Assembly (NCBI GenBank): GCA_037834085.1
Contig: JBBMKC010232725.1
Span: 1-32,783, forward strand
Reading direction: 5' to 3'
From: Bipalium vagum
Lineage: Eukaryota
Length of the DNA stretch: 32,783 bases
Each line of letters starts with the position of its first letter. Within the stretch, counting starts at the first letter, position 1. Made by a program: the position numbers and the translations under genes. The notes below the pieces were generated by a model that worked only from the letters and a program-made list of their open reading frames with translations, was not told where the DNA came from and searched no databases. Shown one piece after another: positions 4,831 to 25,831 of the stretch.

Positions 4831-7659
4831 ATAAAATAAAAGTTATAATTCATATTTTTGAATTTATATAAGTGCTTTAGTAAATGTTTTAATGTCTAAT
4901 TCATTTAATTACTTACAGTTACCATCACATAATATTTTAATAAATTGACTTTAAAATAATTTTATAAAATTGGAAAACTTAAATAAACAAAAATATTTTT
5001 GTATAATTTCAGAGAACTATGATATAAGTATGCATTTTAAGTCTGGGTATTGAGAGAATTCGTGAATTCGGTAATATCAGATTTTCTTAACTGAATAATC
5101 ATAAAATTCGATAAAATGATTTACTATAAATCATTTGAATAAATCTAGCTTAATGATTTTGTTTAAAATCGGTAAACATTTGAAATAGGAGTTATAAATA
5201 AAACCTGATTTTCACGGGAAAATCATTATTTGATTACTTATTATGATTAATTTTAATTAATCAATATTTTACGTATTAATTTTTTTTAATTCTAATATTT
5301 TTATTTATATATATTTTCAATTTCAGTAAAAATTAAAAGATTAAATTAAATAAATTGAATTTAATATTTAGATAAAATTAAAGTTTATAGATTTCCTTGG
5401 ACATTTTATAATATAAAGAAATGATAAAAATTAGTTCCAAATGTTTTGTGTGAATTCAAGTGACATTGATTATCTAATCTCATTCGACAAGACTGATTAA
5501 AGTTTTGTGGTTGTCATATTGAATTTTATTATTAAAAAATGTACGAAAATGAAATAAAAAATGTATTCATGAGTTTTTCCAGAATTTTAGGTGTATTATT
5601 TAGATATCCTGTAATCAATTTTCTTTTTTATATGATGTAATTAAAAATAAATAAATCAATTGAAAAAACGTTAATTAAATCAATTTCACATTACATTGAA
5701 AAAATAATTATCTTTATTTTTGGCAAAATATTTCAAAACATTAATGATTTATTATGAATTTAGTGGAAAGATTATTATTATTATTATTATTACTATTATC
5801 ATTATTATGATAACTGATTCTCCTTGCGGTTCTCCTTACTTCATATTATCTTCGGAGGGGCCTTTGGACGAACCCAACATATTTGATTAATATTTTCTTT
5901 AATATTGCAAACTGCAATGTTTAATAAATATATAAATAAGAATGGAAAGAAATAAAAGATTTTACATTCAAGTTTTATTTATTTATACATTCTCTATTTT
6001 CATTTCCTATTTTCATGAATACCCAGTTCTATATAAATTTTATTTTAATGATTTATAATGAGGACTTATACATTGTCTTTTAGTTTCAAATATTTTTTGT
6101 AATATAACAAGAGAATTTGATATGTAAAATTGAAATGATAAACATCCTTCTTGTAAATATCCTCTCCAGCAGATTTTTCTCACTGAGAAGGCTTATTAAT
6201 TTTAAATAATTTGATTGGTCAAAAATTATAATTATAAAAAATTCGAAATATTTTCACCAATTTTATCACTTATTCCCAAGTTTTCAGTCGTAATTGCAAT
6301 TGAAGAAATAAAGAAAAAGTCTCAAATGTCTTCTATGCAATTTAAAATCATATTTACGTAATTTAATTTACATTCACTCATCATATCTAAACCATAATTA
6401 TGTTTACAATTGAATGGTGAATTGTTTAATTCTGCGTATTATTAGTGATTCTATCACTTGTTTCAAGAAAATTAAGTCTGACTGACAATGACTTTATCTT
6501 CTTTGCCCATGTCTTGTTTCTTGAAAGCTACAACCTTCGGTTATATTTTACTTCAGATGATGGATGTAGTCTATCAATGATGTAGTCTTCTCGTGATTCG
6601 TGCAGGACATCGGAAAGTGGTAACACGTTGTTGATTCTACTCATTTTGTCTATCAGATTCTCTGTTTTCATGTAGCATCGAGAATACTTAAAGAGATTAG
6701 CTTAAGTGAAGTTTGATGAATCGATTTTATGTTACGATATAACTAAATCCATATATCCACTTCGTTATGCGCAGATAAGAATGGAAAAAATATGTATTTA
6801 GAATTATATTTTCAATAATAATAATTATTATTTTTGTAAGGATTAAATTTTAATTAATATTAAATAATGAATAATAAATCATAAATATTTTTAAAATAAA
6901 TTTTAAAGTAATATATTAAAATTTAATCCTTAATGTAAAATAAGCTTTTTAATAATTTTAATAAATTTAAATAGTTTTTAAAAAATTAAAAAATTAAATT
7001 AATTTTAATAAAAGTTTTAGATAATTAATTTGTTTAAATAAAGGATAAAAAGAGATCACGTATTAAAAACATACAATTATTTTCTTCAAATAAAAATGGT
7101 ACAAAATCTTGAGTTTTTGAATTCTGAAACTGTCGATAACGTGGCAGTAACTAACACAAATATTACTGAAATCTAAAGAAACAATTAGAAGATTTCTCAA
7201 TAACAGTGGTCAATCGAAACAATATTTGCCAGCACATTAAAGAGTCAACATTCAATAATATGAAAATCTGAAAAATTAGACACTTCGCAAAATTTTTAAA
7301 AATAACAGTAATTTATTATTTTGCTATTTATTAATATATCAAAAAGCATCGCAAAAAAGTTGTTAGACTGATTGCTTATTAATTAAATTATAAAGTAAAA
7401 TTCACTAGTGTTCCCTTCATAAAAACATAATTATTAGAAGGAATGTCAAATTGTTCATAATTAAATACTTGGGATGCAGCTTCTTTCACTCATTTAGAGC
7501 CAAATAATACCCCTTGGTTCACAATTCAGATCGTAACACAATTAGTTGACAATCTGAAACTTTTCTGATGAGTTATCCAGGCTAATCTTTAGTCGATAAT
7601 AATCTGAACATTAAATATTAATTAAATAAACTTTAGTAAAATCAGGAAGCATCCCAGTT

Positions 7660-8030
7660 AATTTAACGATTGTAACAACGCCGTTCTCTTAGTTAATTGT
7701 TTTAGAGTTTTGTGTTGAGTTAAAAGGGAGGTAGAAAACTACCCTAATATTATTTGATAATTGAAAAGTAGTTTTAATGCACAGTTGGAAAGAATTAGGT
7801 CAGTGCACAGGGTCGATGTTTCTATTGCGGATATGATAGAAATATTGGCATTGCTATATCTTTCTTTAGAAATTTTTTTGAAGATTAAGTGGAAGATTTT
7901 GGCGAAAATTGAACGAATGCATGTAATATGGAATCAAATTTTGTTTCGGAATTATCTATTTTACGTCTGGAAAAAAGCAGATCGTTTAAAGTAATTCTTT
8001 ATCGTTTTATCATGTGGAAACAGCAAAATT
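7660..8030 (-). mobile_element. Possible Penelope-like retroelement relic (thumb/linker region)
   Basis: Minus-strand remnants NSETKFDSIL../IRSIFAK../LPL and VFYLPF resemble the Penelope-like pattern 'S.E.F..EL..I..IF.KNGYP' and 'LPY'. There are many frameshifts. Confidence 0.3.
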
Positions 8031-8123
8031 TTTTAATGCCCAGGAGCTCGGCAAAAAGGAGCAAAAGGTTTTTATGTAGTTTTTATACAATTATATAAAA
8101 GTTTATATATAATTATACAGTTA

Positions 8124-8389
8124 CTGTAAAATCCCCAGTATAAGCTGCAGATAATACGTACACAAAGGCAACATTTTTGAATTGCAGCTAATATGATGTG
8201 CAGCTTATACAACTAAAAAACAATTCAAATCGAAGATAAAATTATTTATTTCAATTTTCAACATCACACTCCTCAAAACCATCACACTTTTCATCAATAC
8301 GTGCTGCAGTTTATACGACTAAAAATACATTTTTATAAAATGTCATCTGCAGCTAATACGCGCTGCAGCTTATACTCGGGATTTTACAG
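8124..8389. mobile_element. 266-bp MITE with 27-bp TIRs and TA flanks (Tc1/mariner superfamily, Tc2/pogo-like ends)
   Basis: Left end CTGTAAAATCCCCAGTATAAGCTGCAG versus the reverse complement of the right end CTGTAAAATCCCGAGTATAAGCTGCAG (26/27 identical). TA at 8122-8123 and 8390-8391. Internal GCAGCTWATA subterminal repeats. Confidence 0.9.
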
Positions 8390-8751
8390 TATATTTTAAT
8401 TATTAATCAAATTTCGGTGTAAATTTTTATTGTCATTTTATTTTTAATTATTTCACTTTCCATTTATTCGTTATAATAATAATAATATTAGAGAACATTT
8501 TCAAAATTTGAAAATTTATTTATCTTAACTTAAACAATTATTCTATTATAATTTTATTTTTCTTGTCAATCTGATAGAGTAAATGGATAATGGTATATAC
8601 ATCCTCCTTTGTCCTTTATTTATAAATAAAAATTATATATGATTAACAGTAACACAAGCGCTATAATAATAATACAAATAATAATAAACGAAATAATTAA
8701 TAACTAACGAAATTTTAATATAAAAATGACATTTTAGTCAACTTTTAACAG

Positions 8752-8881
8752 CAGGTGATATTTAGTCTTTAGCTTAAGTAAGCATTACAAATGATACTTA
8801 GCCATATGGTATACTTGATAATAAAAATATACTTAGCCATTTGTTATAATAAATTTAGAAATAAGATTAGGACTATATAAA
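8752..8881 (+). promoter_or_regulatory. Proximal promoter of the small secreted-protein gene
   Basis: TATATAAA at 8874-8881, about 50 nt before the ATG. Four CANNTG E-boxes at 8752, 8788, 8803 and 8838. A duplicated 20-mer at 8794-8813 and 8829-8848. Confidence 0.6.
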
Positions 8882-8931
8882 GCTTTTGGTAAAGTAATGT
8901 GAAGTTAAATAAGTCTTAGGTTTGTGAAAAT

Positions 8932-8954
8932 ATGACTAAAATTGTTTTCTCGGT
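8932..8954 (+). CDS. Small secreted Cys-rich protein, exon 1 (MTKIVFS + phase-2 split Val)
   Basis: ATG at 8932 downstream of the TATA box. Perfect GTAAGT donor at 8955. The 53-nt intron ends in TTCAG at 9007, and the phase joins in frame with exon 2. Confidence 0.8.
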
Positions 8955-9007
8955 GTAAGTCACAATTAAAAAACATTTTCCCTGATTACGTATGATTATA
9001 TATTCAG

Positions 9008-9278
9008 ATTTATAACAGCAATCGTCATCCTTTTGTTTTCCGTACTAAGTATTCGATCAAATATTTGCACTACTTACACTATTACCCAAGAAATTATTGA
9101 TCGATGCATGTTTCTTTACGGCTTATTTCAACCAGATCGGGCATACCCGGGTAACCGAGCATGCTTCGAAGCTGCCAGAAATACACAGTATTGCGGTGAC
9201 TGCCTGTGTTATTATAACTCAACTTCAACTTGCGAGTTTTTTGATCTTTTGGAACATTATATAGTTACATTATGTTAA
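9008..9278 (+). CDS. Small secreted Cys-rich protein, exon 2 (97 aa total, 8 Cys, family unknown)
   Basis: Spliced product MTKIVFSVFITAIVILLFSVLSIRSNICTTYTITQEIIDRCMFLYGLFQPDRAYPGNRACFEAARNTQYCGDCLCYYNSTSTCEFFDLLEHYIVTLC*. Hydrophobic signal-peptide-like N-terminus, raised GC, intact frame, and AATAAA 21 nt after the stop. Confidence 0.82.
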
Positions 9279-9299
9279 CTGTCACGTATGTTAAGTCAA

Positions 9300-9305
9300 A
9301 ATAAA
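9300..9305 (+). terminator. Polyadenylation signal of the Cys-rich gene
   Basis: AATAAA just after the stop codon, followed by a T-rich tract. Confidence 0.55.
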
Positions 9306-9333
9306 TATTTTTTAATTGTTATATTTTTATTAA

Positions 9334-9703
9334 CCCATCTCATTCCAGAATACAAGATAGCAAAGAAATTTGATTTACTTAGTGGATAATAATTGATATA
9401 GGACCTGTTAAGACTATGTATATGTTTTATAAAAATTAATAAACATTTACTAGGATTTTAGGACTAGTCCCATTTGGGGATCATGGAAACCTTATCATAA
9501 CAATATCATTACAATTAGAAATTACCGCACCAAATCACATATTTTGGTTAGAATGATATACCTCAAAATACTATATAATGCATAATTAAAATATAATGCC
9601 TCTGCAGTGATTTAAATTAATTTATATTTCGTAAAATCTTCAAATAAAGTGTAAATTTCACTCTACAGGGACATCCCAAATGGGGCTTATGAAATGAAAT
9701 GGG
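9334..9703. mobile_element. Degenerate piggyBac-like MITE
   Basis: TTAA|CCCATCTCATTCC at the left and GAAATGAAATGGG at the right (reverse complement CCCATTTCATTTC). Internal inverted motifs TCCCATTTGGGGA and TCCCAAATGGGG. The right target site is degenerate (TTTG). Confidence 0.45.
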
Positions 9704-11769
9704 TTTGTCTGAAATATTACTTTAGTTCAATATCTTAACGATAAGAATTCATAAAGTACTGCGAGAGTTAAATTCCTAAATTTACTAATCATTACATAAG
9801 ACATAGAAGGTTATATCTCAATTTCATTTACGCCAATAAAACAGTATTGAATAATAAAGTGAATTTCAAGTTGAACTCAAGTGTGATATGAAAAACATAT
9901 TTTAATTTAATGTGCTTTTTTCTATTTTAGGACATGAAAGATATTAAAAAAATGCTGAAAAGACCTAATTAATATAAGCATTCTTTAAATTATCAAAAGT
10001 AATTATAATATAAAATATTAATATAAAAAGAAAATATAATAGGGAAAATCAAATTAAACTAATGGTTAAATAATGAAGTGTAAATAATTAAATAATATTT
10101 TGTTATTTTCAATTTATAATTTAATTCATCTTTAAATTTCCAATCGTATTTCATTTATTTATCTCAATCAAGTTGAACTTCGATATCACTGAAGGTCTTC
10201 GGTCAAGATTAATTTAATATTTCTTATGTTTTACAATTTTTTAAAAATCTAGACTTATAGAGTGACTTTATTAATTAGTGGCTCATTTTATGGGAGCGCA
10301 GCGATATTAATAGCGACTACTAATTAAATTTAAATAATATACTATATAATTACAAAGGTAAAGTTAAAATTAATATTACTTTGAGATTAAATTAACCATT
10401 TTAAACAAAATCAAGATGCTGCAACTATTTCGAAAAAGATCCGAAAGATTACATTTATTTCCAATTTCAAATTAAAAGTCATGTAGGAACTTCAAATAGT
10501 AATATTTTATTAACATACTGTAATGATTTGAACAGTTTAATTTAAATACATTTTCAAAAATACAACCTGTAATAAATTTGAGTGAAATTCTGATAAAATA
10601 CCAAAGGTATTTTGTTTTTTAATTATTATTTATATTAGTTACATAATTAAAAAATTACATTTTAAAATTAATTTTCTAGGAAAGATTTTTCCTTAAATTG
10701 ATTAAATTAATTCAATTCTCTTATTTCGATTTAACACTGTGTTGCTATTATACTCAAAATGTACCTTTATGCTCGTTATTCCTCTGATTACTGACTTAGT
10801 TATTTCTCTGTGTGGTAATGAAAATGACCCCAATACACTTCAATTCCAATAATATCTAATGTATCAAAATAATCTTTATGTTACTAGAAATCAAAAAAAT
10901 TGTAACAACCAAGAATTCGATAATAATAGTATATCAAAAACACAAAGTCAAATAATATTATGAATAAAAAATTAAGTGCTGAAATTAATAAAAATAAGGA
11001 CTATATTAGACTATGGGTTGACACTATTAATTAATTTTTAATTATCTTTGATAACAAGTTATAAAAAAGGTTCAGAGATAAATGAGAAAATATAAGGGGA
11101 ACGATTATCCTACTATATCAAGCTGAATTTATGGTGACAGTATCCCATATTTTTCAAAACCGCCTGTTCTTTTTAGTGAACTATATTGACATTCCTTTCA
11201 TAGGAGGCAAAGTATTTAGTTTAGATTATGGATACATTACTTAGTAGTTTAATTTATCTTTTCCAAAAGACAAATTAGAAAATTTCTTAATTATTTCATG
11301 ATATAAATCTTTTTGTTTTCAAAGGAATATTTTCCAAATACGTTAGAGAAAATTATAAATGTAAATTTAATAAAATTATTAAAATTAATTGGTGGATGAT
11401 TCCAGTGCGTTTTTTATCTTGACAGATATTTTTGAGTAGAAAATCTACATATATATTGAACAACTGTCATGGCAGATACGGGAATCTTCAGAAGATAACT
11501 TTACACAGTGTTAATGAGCACTTATAAGTATTCTTTCTAAGTATTCTTTCGCTTTATACTTTCTTTTATAATCCTTTAATTTAGCAAACTACCTAACCAA
11601 AGTATTTTCGAACATATTTTGTTTTTTTTATTGATTTTCTGTACTATTGTTTTTTGCTGTGTTTGTTTTCTATTACTGAGTATTGTGATTTTGAACAAAA
11701 AACTTTTATTATTTTATTTCATATTTTTGGAAATAAGGCTATTTATATTTTTTATCATAAACAATTATA

Positions 11770-12214
11770 ATAAATATGAATACTGTCAACAATTCGACGA
11801 GATGCAGTTGAACCTCCAGAAAACAACCTGTGTTAGTCAATAGAAAGAGAGTGATTCTTTTACACGACAACACTCGACCGCATGTTGCACGTTCGTCCTT
11901 ACAAAAATTAAACCAGTTGGGATTCGAAACCCTGCATCATCCAGCTTACTCACCAGACCTTTCGCCCAAGGATTATCACTTTTTTAAACATCTGCAGAAT
12001 TTTCTGAAGGATAAAACAAACAAGCCTTCTATAATTTCATCGCCACCAGAGGTACGGACTTTTATGCAAATGGCATAAATAAACTTGTGACTTGTTGGCC
12101 AAAGTATATTGATTCAAATGGATCTTATTTTGATTAGCTATGTGCTTTCTTTGTTAAAATATATGTTTTCAAAGTTCTATATTAAAAAACGACATTATTT
12201 TTTTATCAACCTAA
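11770..12214 (+). mobile_element. mariner 3' fragment, cecropia (Hsmar1-like) subfamily, with right TIR
   Basis: EYCQQFDEM..., NRKRVILLHDNTRPHVA...HPAYSPDLSPKDYHFFKHLQNFL (D34D spacing), DFYANGINKLVTCWPKYIDSNGSYFD*. TIR-like AAAAAACGACATTATTTTTTTATCAACCTAA followed by TA at 12215. Confidence 0.92.
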
Positions 12215-14936: not shown

Positions 14937-15970
14937 CGTAGGTCAGTCGAAAAGTTTCGGTAATGGAAGATATGGAAAGGTTTAGTAAAAATACAAAATT
15001 TAATCATTAAAAAAATTATTTTAACACTATATTACTTTTATCTAATAATAAAAATTGCATTTTTATTAATAAATATTTACATTTAAATATGAAATACAAA
15101 GCGGAAAATATGAATTTATCAATTGAAAACTTTTGAGCAATGATTTCATTTGATTTCCGGTTCAGATTGTCACAGAAACAGTGTCTCGATAGCTTAAATT
15201 CGGTATTTCCTGATGATGGTCCATCGAAAACTATAGTGTATTGATGGTTTCATGAATTTAAGTATGGGCGCGTCTCTTTGGGTGTTGATTTAAGGAAGGT
15301 TGTCCAAAAACAAGTGTATCCAATGAAAATATTGAGGTTGTTCGAAAATTAATTGAAGAAGATCGTCGGACAACATATGATGAAATCCAGACATCATTGA
15401 ACATACTTCGGACTTCAATCCATTCTATTTTACATGAACGCTTGGGTGTCAGAAAGTTATCTTTAAAATTGATGAAAAACGAGATCGCGTTAATTGGTCC
15501 AAAGCTATGGTCGATAAATTTAAGCAGTGAACTCTAAAACATATTAATGACATTGTCAGTGGCAATAAATCATGGATATAAAGCAATAGTCAACCTTTTG
15601 GGTGTCTCAGGACGAAAAATTACCAACGAAAGTTGTTCGATCCAGGAACTCCTCTAAGCAAATGGTTGCTTGTTTCGTGTTCAAATCAGGTCATGTCGCT
15701 ACCATTCCTTTGATGATCGTTGCACAGTTTCTTCGAATTGGTATACCACAGTTTGCTTGCCTAGAACTTTCAAAGAATTGGGAAAAAGCAACTCGAAACA
15801 CTGTATTATATTTCATCATGATAATGCCATATTCCATACAGCTCATATAAGAATTGATTTTTTGAGGACTCAAAACGTTTAATTATTAAGCCATACTTCT
15901 CATAGTTCTGACTTGATATCAAATGACTTCTTCACATTTTGTTCAATCAAATGAATTGTGTGGGCAGCAG
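14937..15970 (+). mobile_element. Decayed mariner element (5' TIR plus most of the transposase; tentatively irritans-related)
   Basis: TA then CGTAGGTCAGTCGAAAAGTTTC (TIR-like). ATG at 15110 reads MNLSIENF*AMISFDFR..PSKTIVY*WFHEFKYGR. Later DIVSGNKSWIY, QDEKLPTKVVRSRNSSKQMVACF..SGHVATIP, WYTTVCLP, IIFHHDNA, SSDLISNDFF. The 3' end is missing. Confidence 0.92.
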
Positions 15971-20778: not shown

Positions 20779-20910
20779 ATATGGATTGTCAACTGGTTCA
20801 AGTTGCTTTTGATTTTATTTTTATTTCAATCAGATTTTATTCTGTGAGACATCCTCTTTTTGGATATATTTTCCATATTTTACACCAATCAAGCGAAATT
20901 GCCAATAGAA

Positions 20911-21274
20911 ATGTATTTTATAGGATCGTTTAGCCATACCAATACCGTATCACAAAATTTTGAGAATCTGTTCCTGATCACAATACTCTGCTATGTGATA
21001 GCAAGTCCCATCAATAGAGGGGAAGAATTTCAAGTTGATGATCCACAAAATCCTGCCAATTTTATATCAGAAAGACAGCGAATAATTGCTGAATTCAAGG
21101 CAAAGCTCTTGTCACGGTTGAATCTATCTCAGTTACCGAAAATCAACAAATCCTTCGATTGGACTACCATACCGGAGGAAATGAAAAATCTACTGAACCA
21201 AGAAATTGTTACCGAAGACGATACAAGAGACTCAAAATCGAAAATTGAAACGATGATAATACCTCTCGTCAAAA
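20911..21274 (+). CDS. Activin/inhibin-beta-like TGF-beta ligand, exon 1 (signal peptide and prodomain)
   Basis: MYFIG...LFLITILCYVIASP signal peptide. RIIAEFKAKLLSRLNLSQLPKI is the conserved prodomain helix/latency-lasso motif. GTATGC donor at 21275, phase 1. Confidence 0.88.
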
Positions 21275-21355
21275 GTATGCATCAATGTCAGCTACTTAAT
21301 AATTATCGATTATAATAATAATAGTGACGTAATATTTTTATTTATTTGATTTCAG

Positions 21356-21723
21356 TGAATTCGTGTGGTGAAAGTTCTGTGATCAATCAACAATGTCTTA
21401 ACCTTAGTCTGTCGGATCTGGGCAATAAGGAAATTATCAGTGCCAATCTTATCATCCCCATCACGAAAAAGGCTATCGGAAATAAATTTCCAACTTCAAT
21501 TAGTTATAACATCACTGTAAATAATCAATCCGAATTGACTTATGATTTGTCATTAAACAGAGACACTAGTAACAGTGTAACCATTGACTGGACAGTCATT
21601 TTAAATACCTTGTTGAATGATGATGACGACTTCGATATGATTCGAAGCGTTCTGTCGTGGACAGTGTCGATCATTGGATCAAATCAAGCGTATCCAGTGG
21701 AACGGATGATGGATTTGAAAAAT
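21356..21723 (+). CDS. Activin-like ligand, exon 2 (prodomain arm)
   Basis: TTTCAG acceptor at 21355 after an 81-nt intron. The phase-1 join is in frame and the frame is open. GTTAGT donor at 21724, phase 0. Confidence 0.85.
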
Positions 21724-22541
21724 GTTAGTTACCAAATTTCATTTTTATATTTAGAACTACCATCACTCATTGTATTAAAAATATTGATCTAAGAATTTCA
21801 TAAATAAATAACGTTGAAAGCTTTCTTGCTTAACTGGGAAGTACTTCAAAGAACTGAAGCCTGTTTTCAAGATATTATTTTTTTAATTGTTAATTATAAT
21901 TTAATATTTCAATTTAAAATAAAAAAAATACTGAAATTTTTGAAAAAGTATCTTATTTTATTTATTTATTAATAATAAATTATTTTTTTAAATTAACTGG
22001 AATTTATTAAATTCTTCAAAAATTCTGAATATTGATAATAAAAATAATAATAAATAATATATTGATAAAATAATCTTACAACTTTATTTTAAAAAATTAA
22101 AATGCTATTTAATTTTTAAAGAATTTTTTTTTCTTAAAAAAATAAAATTCTTAATAAATCTAAAGTTAGTAAAAATGATAATAATAATATTTTATTACTA
22201 AATAATAATAATTTAAACAAAAAAAAATCATTGAATTTTCATATTTATTTTTGAACTTTATAAAATGTTCTTTTCTGGGAATTTTTGTTTGATTAATTTA
22301 AACAAGATTTCTGTCATTTAGTTAACATCTTTAACCATATGTGAATTTTATTTCAAATCTATATTTATAAAGAAATTTGTACTTTATTAAAGATAAATTT
22401 TTCATAAATATTTGTTAAAAAGGAAATTTTAATTTTAAAAATAAGTTTAATGAAATAAATCAACAAATAAAAATTAATCAAGAAATTTTAAAAAAAGATT
22501 ATAAACTTTTTTATTTTAATTATTTTTAAATTTTTAAAATT

Positions 22542-25010: not shown

Positions 25011-25634
25011 TCTGTTACTTATATTTTCCATTATACTTATATTATTTTAATATACTTTTAATATGAAAAGAAATCAGCATAAAATAATTTCGACATTATA
25101 ATTAATTAAAATTAATTAATGAAAATAAATAAATATATTAAAAAAATCAATAGTTTCTAAATTTCTTAGTACAATTAAAAATGTTATTTATTCTTTATAT
25201 TATAAGAAATAGGGTTTTAATATTCAAATATTATATATACAATTTAAATGTTGTATTCGTTATACATATATATATAGTATTAATTTCTAAAAAATAATAA
25301 TAAAATAAAAACATAATATTATTAAAGTAAAATAATATAAAATATAATAATATTAATAAAAAAAATTAAAATATAAAAATAAATAAATAAAATAATAAAA
25401 AATCATTACATTCAATTAATTTTCAATATTGAAATGTCAATGATCATTGACTGTACTACGGTAGTCTGGAAAGAAACTTTGTGACTATAATAATGATTTC
25501 ATATGTTAACTCTATATCAAATTTTATTATTTTTATTATTTTATGATTAAACGACTTTGGTCGCGAGATTGGAAATATTTAAAAAATCTTACAATGTAAA
25601 TGTCAGAGACTTTTGAAAACCCTTAACATTTCAG

Positions 25635-25831
25635 ATATCACCTATTCTTCCAACCATGCCATCGCAGTCCATTTTGCTCGGAAAAAAGACATTCAACCTC
25701 GCAAAGAAATCAGATCATGCTGCGTTCCTTACAGTTATCAGAATTTCACATTTATGTATTTAAAGCCAGACAATTCCATAGCCATAGAAACATTTAACGA
25801 TTTGATTGCTTCCACTTGTGGATGTCTTTGA
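25635..25831 (+). CDS. Activin-like ligand, exon 4 (C-half of the cystine knot and stop); the full CDS is 374 aa
   Basis: CTTAAC branch-like site and TTTCAG acceptor at 25634 give a phase-1 in-frame join: YITYSSNHAIAVHFARKKDIQPRKEIRSCCVPYSYQNFTFMYLKPDNSIAIETFNDLIASTCGCL*. The mature domain has 9 Cys (C, CC, CxGxC, CC, CxC). The four exons sum to 1125 nt. Confidence 0.93.

Follow-up and report, generated by a model that had tools for sequence, protein, structure and literature searches.

Whether a short reading frame in AT-rich flatworm DNA belongs to a real gene, and what kind of protein such a gene might encode, is the question raised by positions 8932-9278 of Bipalium vagum contig JBBMKC010232725.1. 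We analyzed this contig from position 1 to 32,783 on the forward strand; this whole 32,783-nt stretch is called the window, and its gene, or gene copy, is called W. An earlier note, made from the letters of the sequence, had proposed there a compact two-exon gene for an apparently orphan secreted protein with eight cysteines. Our analysis indicates that W is probably one of the intact copies in a multigene family restricted to its lineage; this family comprises ca. 13 intact genes plus pseudogenes and is predicted to encode acidic, secreted, helical mini-proteins with four disulfides.

Gene structure of W and its recurrence in the genome

The window is AT-rich throughout (14–33% GC per kb). 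A TATA box, TATATAAA (8874-8881, +), was read in the sequence 58 nt 5′ of the ATG (8932-8934), which opens a micro-exon of 23 nt (8932-8954, +) encoding MTKIVFS and two bases of a Val codon. A phase-2 intron of 53 nt (8955-9007, +; GTAAGT...TTCAG) interrupts the signal-peptide coding region and is followed by exon 2 (9008-9278, +), which reads from 9009 as 89 residues. The first part of exon 2 (9008-9059, +) covers the remainder of the signal peptide, with the hydrophobic core FITAIVILLFSVLS and the c-region IRS, its end being placed by paralog alignment. The mature-protein coding part (9060-9275, +) specifies 72 aa with eight Cys, a pI of 4.5, and one NST sequon, and is predicted to be all-helical with five helices. 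The stop codon TAA (9276-9278, +) was likewise read in the sequence, and a poly(A) signal, AATAAA (9300-9305, +), lies 22 nt 3′ of it. Spliced in this manner, W encodes a 97-aa precursor with Cys at positions 28, 41, 60, 70, 73, 75, 83, and 97 (C-x12-C-x18-C-x9-C-x2-C-x-C-x7-C-x13-C), one NST sequon, and zero dibasic sites. The TATA box, ATG, 53-nt intron, stop codon, and AATAAA were all found where the earlier note had placed them, and its reading of the Cys framework, the single sequon, and the lack of dibasic sites was correct in each respect.

The length of the reading frame alone is within chance: at 25% GC, the window is expected to contain ca. 0.5 frames that run for 102 codons without a stop, and it has 17 listed ORFs (open reading frames) of at least 70 aa. 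The case for a gene therefore rests on comparative evidence. We searched the genome of the same species in six frames (440 Mb in 272,664 contigs). A single-sequence search with exon 2 gave 14 loci, and profile searches gave 21–23 matching stretches. These were collapsed into ca. 16 full-length loci, 12 of which are intact, and ca. 3 degenerate fragments; one further intact locus, L029, is cut by a contig end. Three full-length loci carry in-frame stops (L003, L009 [the same as L025], and L010), and contig C684 carries two family members at a distance of 5 kb.

The other loci begin with an ATG and an exon 1 of 20 or 23 nt, and with either length the intron is in phase 2. The donor GTAAG is followed by an intron of 45–61 nt ending in YAG, whose position and phase are conserved in 13 of the 14 loci examined; the pseudogene L003 combines a GC donor in place of GT with its in-frame stop. 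Exon 2 of the paralogs starts in the hydrophobic core of the signal peptide. The sequence TATA[AT]A was found 44–58 nt 5′ of the ATG at 14 of 15 paralogous loci, and an AATAAA-type signal is present downstream of the stop codon in the paralogs as well. The intact proteins form four or five subfamilies. All eight Cys and two Tyr are invariant across the family; two further elements, an LCFEAA-like motif and C-x2-C-x-C-Y, are almost invariant. The same gene structure thus recurs at loci whose proteins are only 23–30% identical to the W protein.

Since this anatomy recurs at ca. 15 other loci of the genome, the gene model is far beyond chance, and W is almost certainly a real small two-exon gene. 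The opposite proposal, that W is a chance ORF accompanied by fortuitous splice- and promoter-like motifs, draws on the expected frequency of 102-codon frames given above. It is refuted by the ca. 15 paralogous loci that share the gene structure, by the invariant Cys, and by significant purifying selection (see below), and its probability is close to nil. The term orphan was right in that no characterised family matched, and wrong in that W is not a singleton in its genome. By eye, the flanks of six paralogs from the other subfamilies (L005, L007, L008, L011, L012, and L014) were more GC-rich than the DNA around W; base composition is therefore heterogeneous across the genome.

Features of the encoded proteins

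The W precursor starts with MTK, followed by a hydrophobic core of 14 residues and IRS. Each precursor of the family has an N-terminal Met-Lys/Asn start and a hydrophobic core, and several paralogs have small-x-small sites two residues before the first Cys (VSA↓ETC, AKA↓NYC, and VKA↓DYC). The classical marks of a secreted protein (n-region, hydrophobic core, and small-x-small motif) are thus readable from the sequences. In W, the signal peptide is predicted to be cut after S25 or possibly after S22, and in either case Cys28 would stay in the mature chain. The earlier note had considered that cleavage after C28 might leave an odd number of Cys and permit dimerisation. This is unlikely, because C28 is invariant in 12 of the 12 paralogs that cover this position and the paralog sites lie before it. 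With Cys28 retained, the mature chain would have eight Cys, enough for four disulfides. A Cys as the final residue, also pointed out in the earlier note, is a property of the W subfamily; the other subfamilies carry one or two residues beyond it.

The mature chains of the 13 members have 72–75 aa, a pI of 4.0–5.05, a net charge of −4 to −9, and 12–17% aromatic residues. N-x-S/T sequons are present in 12 of the 13 chains. KR, RR, KK, and RK are absent from 12 of the 13, and the single exception lies 4 residues from the C-terminus. This count bears out for the family the absence of prohormone processing sites, and a prohormone was ruled out on this basis.

To model the fold, AlphaFold2 was run with the alignment of 13 paralogs. 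The W protein was predicted with a pLDDT of 91.1 and a pTM of 0.79 and has helices at 2–5, 10–23, 33–40, 45–54, and 64–71. L014, which is 27% identical, gave a pLDDT of 86.6 and a pTM of 0.75 with the same overall helical layout. Both predicted models are confident and all-helical.

An upstream E-box shared by the family

The E-box CCANNTGGT, with the core CATATG, CACATG, CACCTG, or CATCTG, was found 93–104 nt 5′ of the ATG in nine of the ten other intact loci with enough upstream sequence. In W, the E-box-like palindrome CCATATGGT (8802-8810, +) lies at −130 and is therefore displaced by ca. 35 nt. A degenerate second copy, CCATTTGTT (8837-8845, +), occupies the ancestral −95 position and is the product of a local duplication of ca. 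35 nt. This duplication and displacement belong to the lineage of W, L002, and L003. Two pseudogenes, L009 and L010, and the decaying copy L013 lack the E-box or have it in degenerate form. Over both strands of the whole 32.8-kb window, the motif occurs only three times. The preservation of its position across subfamilies that are >70% diverged in protein suggests that a factor of the bHLH (basic helix-loop-helix) type regulates the family in common, and the shared E-box would fit expression in one specialised cell type.

Selection and duplication within the family

We calculated the ratio of non-synonymous to synonymous divergence (dN/dS) for exon 2 by the Nei-Gojobori method and compared synonymous with non-synonymous changes by Fisher tests. 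The ratio was 0.31 for W and L004 (dS ca. 1.2, p = 4e-5), 0.09 for L011 and L014 (p = 2.5e-9), 0.26 for L006 and L014 (p = 8e-6), and 0.41–0.51 for pairs among L005, L008, L012, and L024 (p < 0.01 in the two pairs tested). Two pairs had ratios not significantly below 1, namely L007 and L013 (0.82) and W and L003 (about 1). With most pairs at 0.09–0.5, the family is under purifying selection. The two high values fit the decay of L013, which has lost both its E-box and its FEAA motif, and the pseudogene state of L003.

W lies in a segmentally duplicated unit (8819-9995, strand not assigned) that is 91% identical to a part of contig C211761 (blastn and alignment), where L002 is located. Parts of this unit, and sequence beyond it, are also common to contig C207020, which carries L003/L033. 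We considered whether L002 is the other haplotype of W. This was ruled out because the similarity is limited to 8819-9995 and the remaining 10 kb of C211761 is unlike the window; L002 is thus a paralog. Contigs C211761 and C207020 both end at the position equivalent to window position 8819, and the 5′ cassettes of the W, L002, and L003 copies are 95–98% identical. The shared contig ends and the similar 5′ cassettes, set against 82% identity for exon 2 of L003, suggest either gene conversion or a break in the assembly where the copies are nearly identical.

The comparison of W with L003 showed a mosaic pattern. The 5′ flank, micro-exon, and intron are 95–96% identical (8 differences in 189 nt), whereas exon 2 differs at 49 of 268 nt and has 82% identity (Fisher p = 3e-6 for the contrast). 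Synonymous divergence in exon 2 (0.19–0.25) is well above the divergence of the intron and flank, and therefore the contrast calls for more than selection acting on the protein. Either gene conversion may keep the 5′ cassette uniform, or exon 2 may be changing faster. The pattern comes from a single pair that includes a pseudogene. In gene families for toxins and pheromones, a conserved signal region is likewise joined to a mature region that changes fast.

Searches for relatives outside the genome

The W protein was compared with Pfam, and no family was obtained at E ≤ 10. None of the paralogs reached a Pfam gathering threshold; isolated sub-threshold matches in single paralogs (CATSPERG and CamS) are attributed to chance. 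A word-indexed search of 5.8 billion clusters with exon 2 and with the mature alignment of 13 sequences was blank. A full HMM (hidden Markov model) search of 1.84 billion representatives gave no credible relative; its one match, P0001, is a 1975-aa bacterial repeat protein that aligns over 34 profile positions via a CxxCxxC-PPVTYDS repeat and was judged spurious. Among PDB sequences there was no relative, the only match being a geranylgeranyl transferase at E 0.4, and ESM Atlas searches with two paralogs gave nothing usable. A full-text search of the literature found no description of such a family. The outside sequence collections did not return the members from B. vagum itself either; the genes of this species are therefore apparently not in these collections, and relatives may exist in unsampled flatworms.

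Structure searches with Foldseek gave no match at E ≤ 0.001 in PDB or BFVD. In the lists of structural matches, the saposin-like proteins (SAPLIP) were the only recurring class of small secreted disulfide proteins, and assorted DNA-binding helical domains scored level with them. The claim that the protein matches no characterised family was thus upheld by both the sequence and the predicted-fold searches.

Surroundings of the gene in the window

A C-terminal half of a TGF-beta-family cystine-knot domain, ending in ...CGCL, is encoded at 25613-25831 (+) (Pfam TGF_beta, E 6.7e-10). Two long ORFs of ca. 150 aa each at 20860-21315 and 21346-21792 (+) gave no Pfam match and may be exons of the TGF-beta prodomain. 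Remnants of mariner/Tc1-type DDE transposases with HDN..PH are present at 11830-12078 (+) and 15602-15882 (+) (Pfam DDE_3, sub-threshold, E 1.9e-4). W therefore lies in a stretch rich in transposable elements. An Rfam scan of the whole window gave no family at the gathering score, hammerhead included.

A very high-copy repeat spans ca. 9321-9482, with its peak at 9348-9428, directly past the poly(A) signal of W. In the contigs of the public run X1, the depth is ca. 20–110 across W and its 5′ flank and climbs to 5,500–9,000 at this repeat, with many loose ends and two skip joints. An element of ca. 320 nt at 6837-7156 is 89% identical to L034:6263-6574; one copy lies near W and the other near its paralog L004, on opposite sides of the respective gene, and the element is probably a dispersed repeat.

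Proposed pathway, function, and status of W

We infer transcription, splicing, signal-peptide cleavage, disulfide formation, and secretion of the W product from the sequence features as follows. Transcription would start from the TATA-box promoter with its conserved upstream E-box, and the 53-nt phase-2 intron would be excised from the signal-peptide coding region. The 97-aa precursor would enter the secretory pathway, where the signal peptide would be cut 2–5 residues before the first conserved Cys. The acidic chain of 72 aa would then fold as four or five short helices packed into a compact bundle, which four disulfides between the eight invariant Cys would lock. It would probably carry one N-glycan and be released whole, with no peptides cut off.

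A TATA/E-box promoter, a signal peptide, an intact acidic domain of 72 aa with four predicted disulfides and a probable glycan, and ca. 13 divergent copies that evolve by birth and death form a combination often seen in proteins which dedicated secretory cells produce abundantly for a role in the extracellular space. Our tentative proposal is that W encodes a stable binding protein that acts extracellularly and that a single, dedicated secretory cell type would make in large amounts and release to the exterior. In mucus, in an adhesive or defensive secretion, or as a water-borne chemical signal, it might bind a partner or a small hydrophobic ligand without lysing membranes. Its acidity argues against a cationic membrane-lytic peptide, and a cationic antimicrobial was ruled out by the charge of 13 of 13 members. 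Among the functions that the earlier note had listed, an antimicrobial is consequently disfavoured, while a mucus or adhesive component, a toxin, a pheromone, and a signalling ligand are all still candidates.

Several points weigh against this interpretation. The locus is present in a single public run, X1, which consists of genomic sequence and gives no junction evidence either way; it was judged to be DNA, not RNA, because its contigs contain the intron, and these contigs show both W and its 95% duplicate. Expression and splicing of W are thus suggested by conservation. Between W and L002, 13 coding differences gave a dN/dS of 0.63, which is not distinguishable from 1, and constraint on W since the duplication is therefore not demonstrated. 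The AlphaFold2 models were built on a multiple sequence alignment of 13 paralogs only. The cleavage site of W was placed by alignment, and the four disulfides are deduced from the eight invariant Cys. Finally, the proposed function was deduced only from charge, composition, family dynamics, and promoter type.

The run and the ratio just described are also compatible with W being a recent non-functional or silent duplicate, in which case the family is real and this locus is unexpressed or turning into a pseudogene. The state of the family and of the locus adds to this: three of the ca. 16 loci carry stops and others are fragments, the E-box of W is displaced by the duplication of ca. 35 nt, and W sits in a gene-poor stretch rich in transposable elements with the high-copy repeat just past its poly(A) signal. 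However, W retains an open frame with the eight Cys, the ATG, consensus donor and acceptor sites, a TATA box, one E-box in intact form, and AATAAA, and its coding identity with L002 (95.2%) exceeds the identity of the 3′ flank (91.9%). We consider a silent copy unlikely, and an intact family member is the reading that we retain for W.

Gene finders systematically overlook small secreted proteins whose first exon is tiny, and here a whole family of ca. 13 genes has no counterpart among 1.84 billion representative proteins. If the lineage is planarian, such families are candidates for the little-known proteins of mucus, of adhesive or defensive secretions, or of chemical communication. With its conserved position, the E-box/TATA cassette provides a way towards the transcription factor that specifies the cells making these proteins.

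Comparison with known systems

The SAPLIP class (saposins, NK-lysin, amoebapores, and caenopores) resembles the predicted proteins of the W family in several respects. SAPLIP are secreted, have ca. 75–80 aa, are acidic in many members, and are built from 4–5 short helices that disulfides lock together, with Cys near each end of the chain. Six Cys are conserved in SAPLIP, spaced as C-x2-C ... C-x~10-C ... C-x5-C. The W-family framework differs from this pattern and is invariant across 12–13 paralogs, and no SapB match was obtained with the SapB_1 and SapB_2 profiles at E ≤ 10 for 13 of 13 members. The family might nevertheless be a very divergent SAPLIP branch, a lipid or membrane binder re-stapled with a different set of Cys. 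We record SAPLIP as the nearest shape and as a rival, not as membership; with neither the saposin Cys pattern nor the SapB profiles recovered, such an origin is improbable.

Small, all-helical proteins with four disulfides and a CxC that accommodate hydrophobic ligands are also known among the non-specific lipid transfer proteins (nsLTPs) and 2S albumins of the eight-cysteine-motif class and among fungal CFEM proteins. The nsLTP motif is C...C...CC...CxC...C...C, with a CC pair and a single CxC, whereas the W family has C-x2-C-x-C and no CC. Furthermore, nsLTPs are basic and restricted to plants and CFEM proteins are fungal, unlike the acidic W family, for which neither Pfam nor the fold searches returned an nsLTP or CFEM match.

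The CHH/ITP peptides have a mature chain of ca. 72 aa that is helical and rich in disulfides. The predicted all-helical, disulfide-rich mature chain of ca. 72 aa in W is near this size, and some bHLH factors of neuroendocrine cells act via E-box-driven promoters. Both points could be taken to indicate a neuro-endocrine or paracrine hormone, a helical disulfide ligand like CHH/ITP, eclosion hormone, or the insulin-like peptides, which would act on a receptor within the animal. However, CHH/ITP have six Cys with other spacing and the W family has eight. Pfam gave no match to any hormone family (none to Crust_neurohorm at E ≤ 10), and there was no structural match to solved CHH-family members. 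The evolution of the family also speaks against a classical hormone: a birth-and-death pattern with ca. 13 divergent copies and several pseudogenes is atypical for CHH/ITP and unusual for hormones with dedicated receptors. Taken together, a hormone is very improbable.

Aplysia attractin and the Euplotes Er pheromones are likewise small, acidic, helical, stapled by disulfides, and secreted intact, and they are encoded by fast-evolving, lineage-restricted genes. They differ from the W family in being shorter (ca. 40–58 aa) and in having six Cys in other frameworks, and no sequence or fold match connects them with it. It is possible, if doubtful, that the W family represents an undescribed disulfide-rich all-alpha fold of this flatworm lineage, made in one secretory cell type under the E-box/TATA cassette and evolving in the manner of venoms and pheromones. 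If so, it would be a new scaffold for extracellular recognition, serving as a pheromone, a defensive or prey-directed effector, or a ligand carrier. The helical four-disulfide model, which has no convincing neighbor in PDB, may correspond to a new and very stable mini-protein scaffold. Lineage-specific, Cys-rich secreted families are common in invertebrate genomes, and in this context the finding is useful and not surprising: what is new is the family, and the class to which it belongs, that of lineage-specific secreted disulfide-rich mini-proteins, is already familiar.
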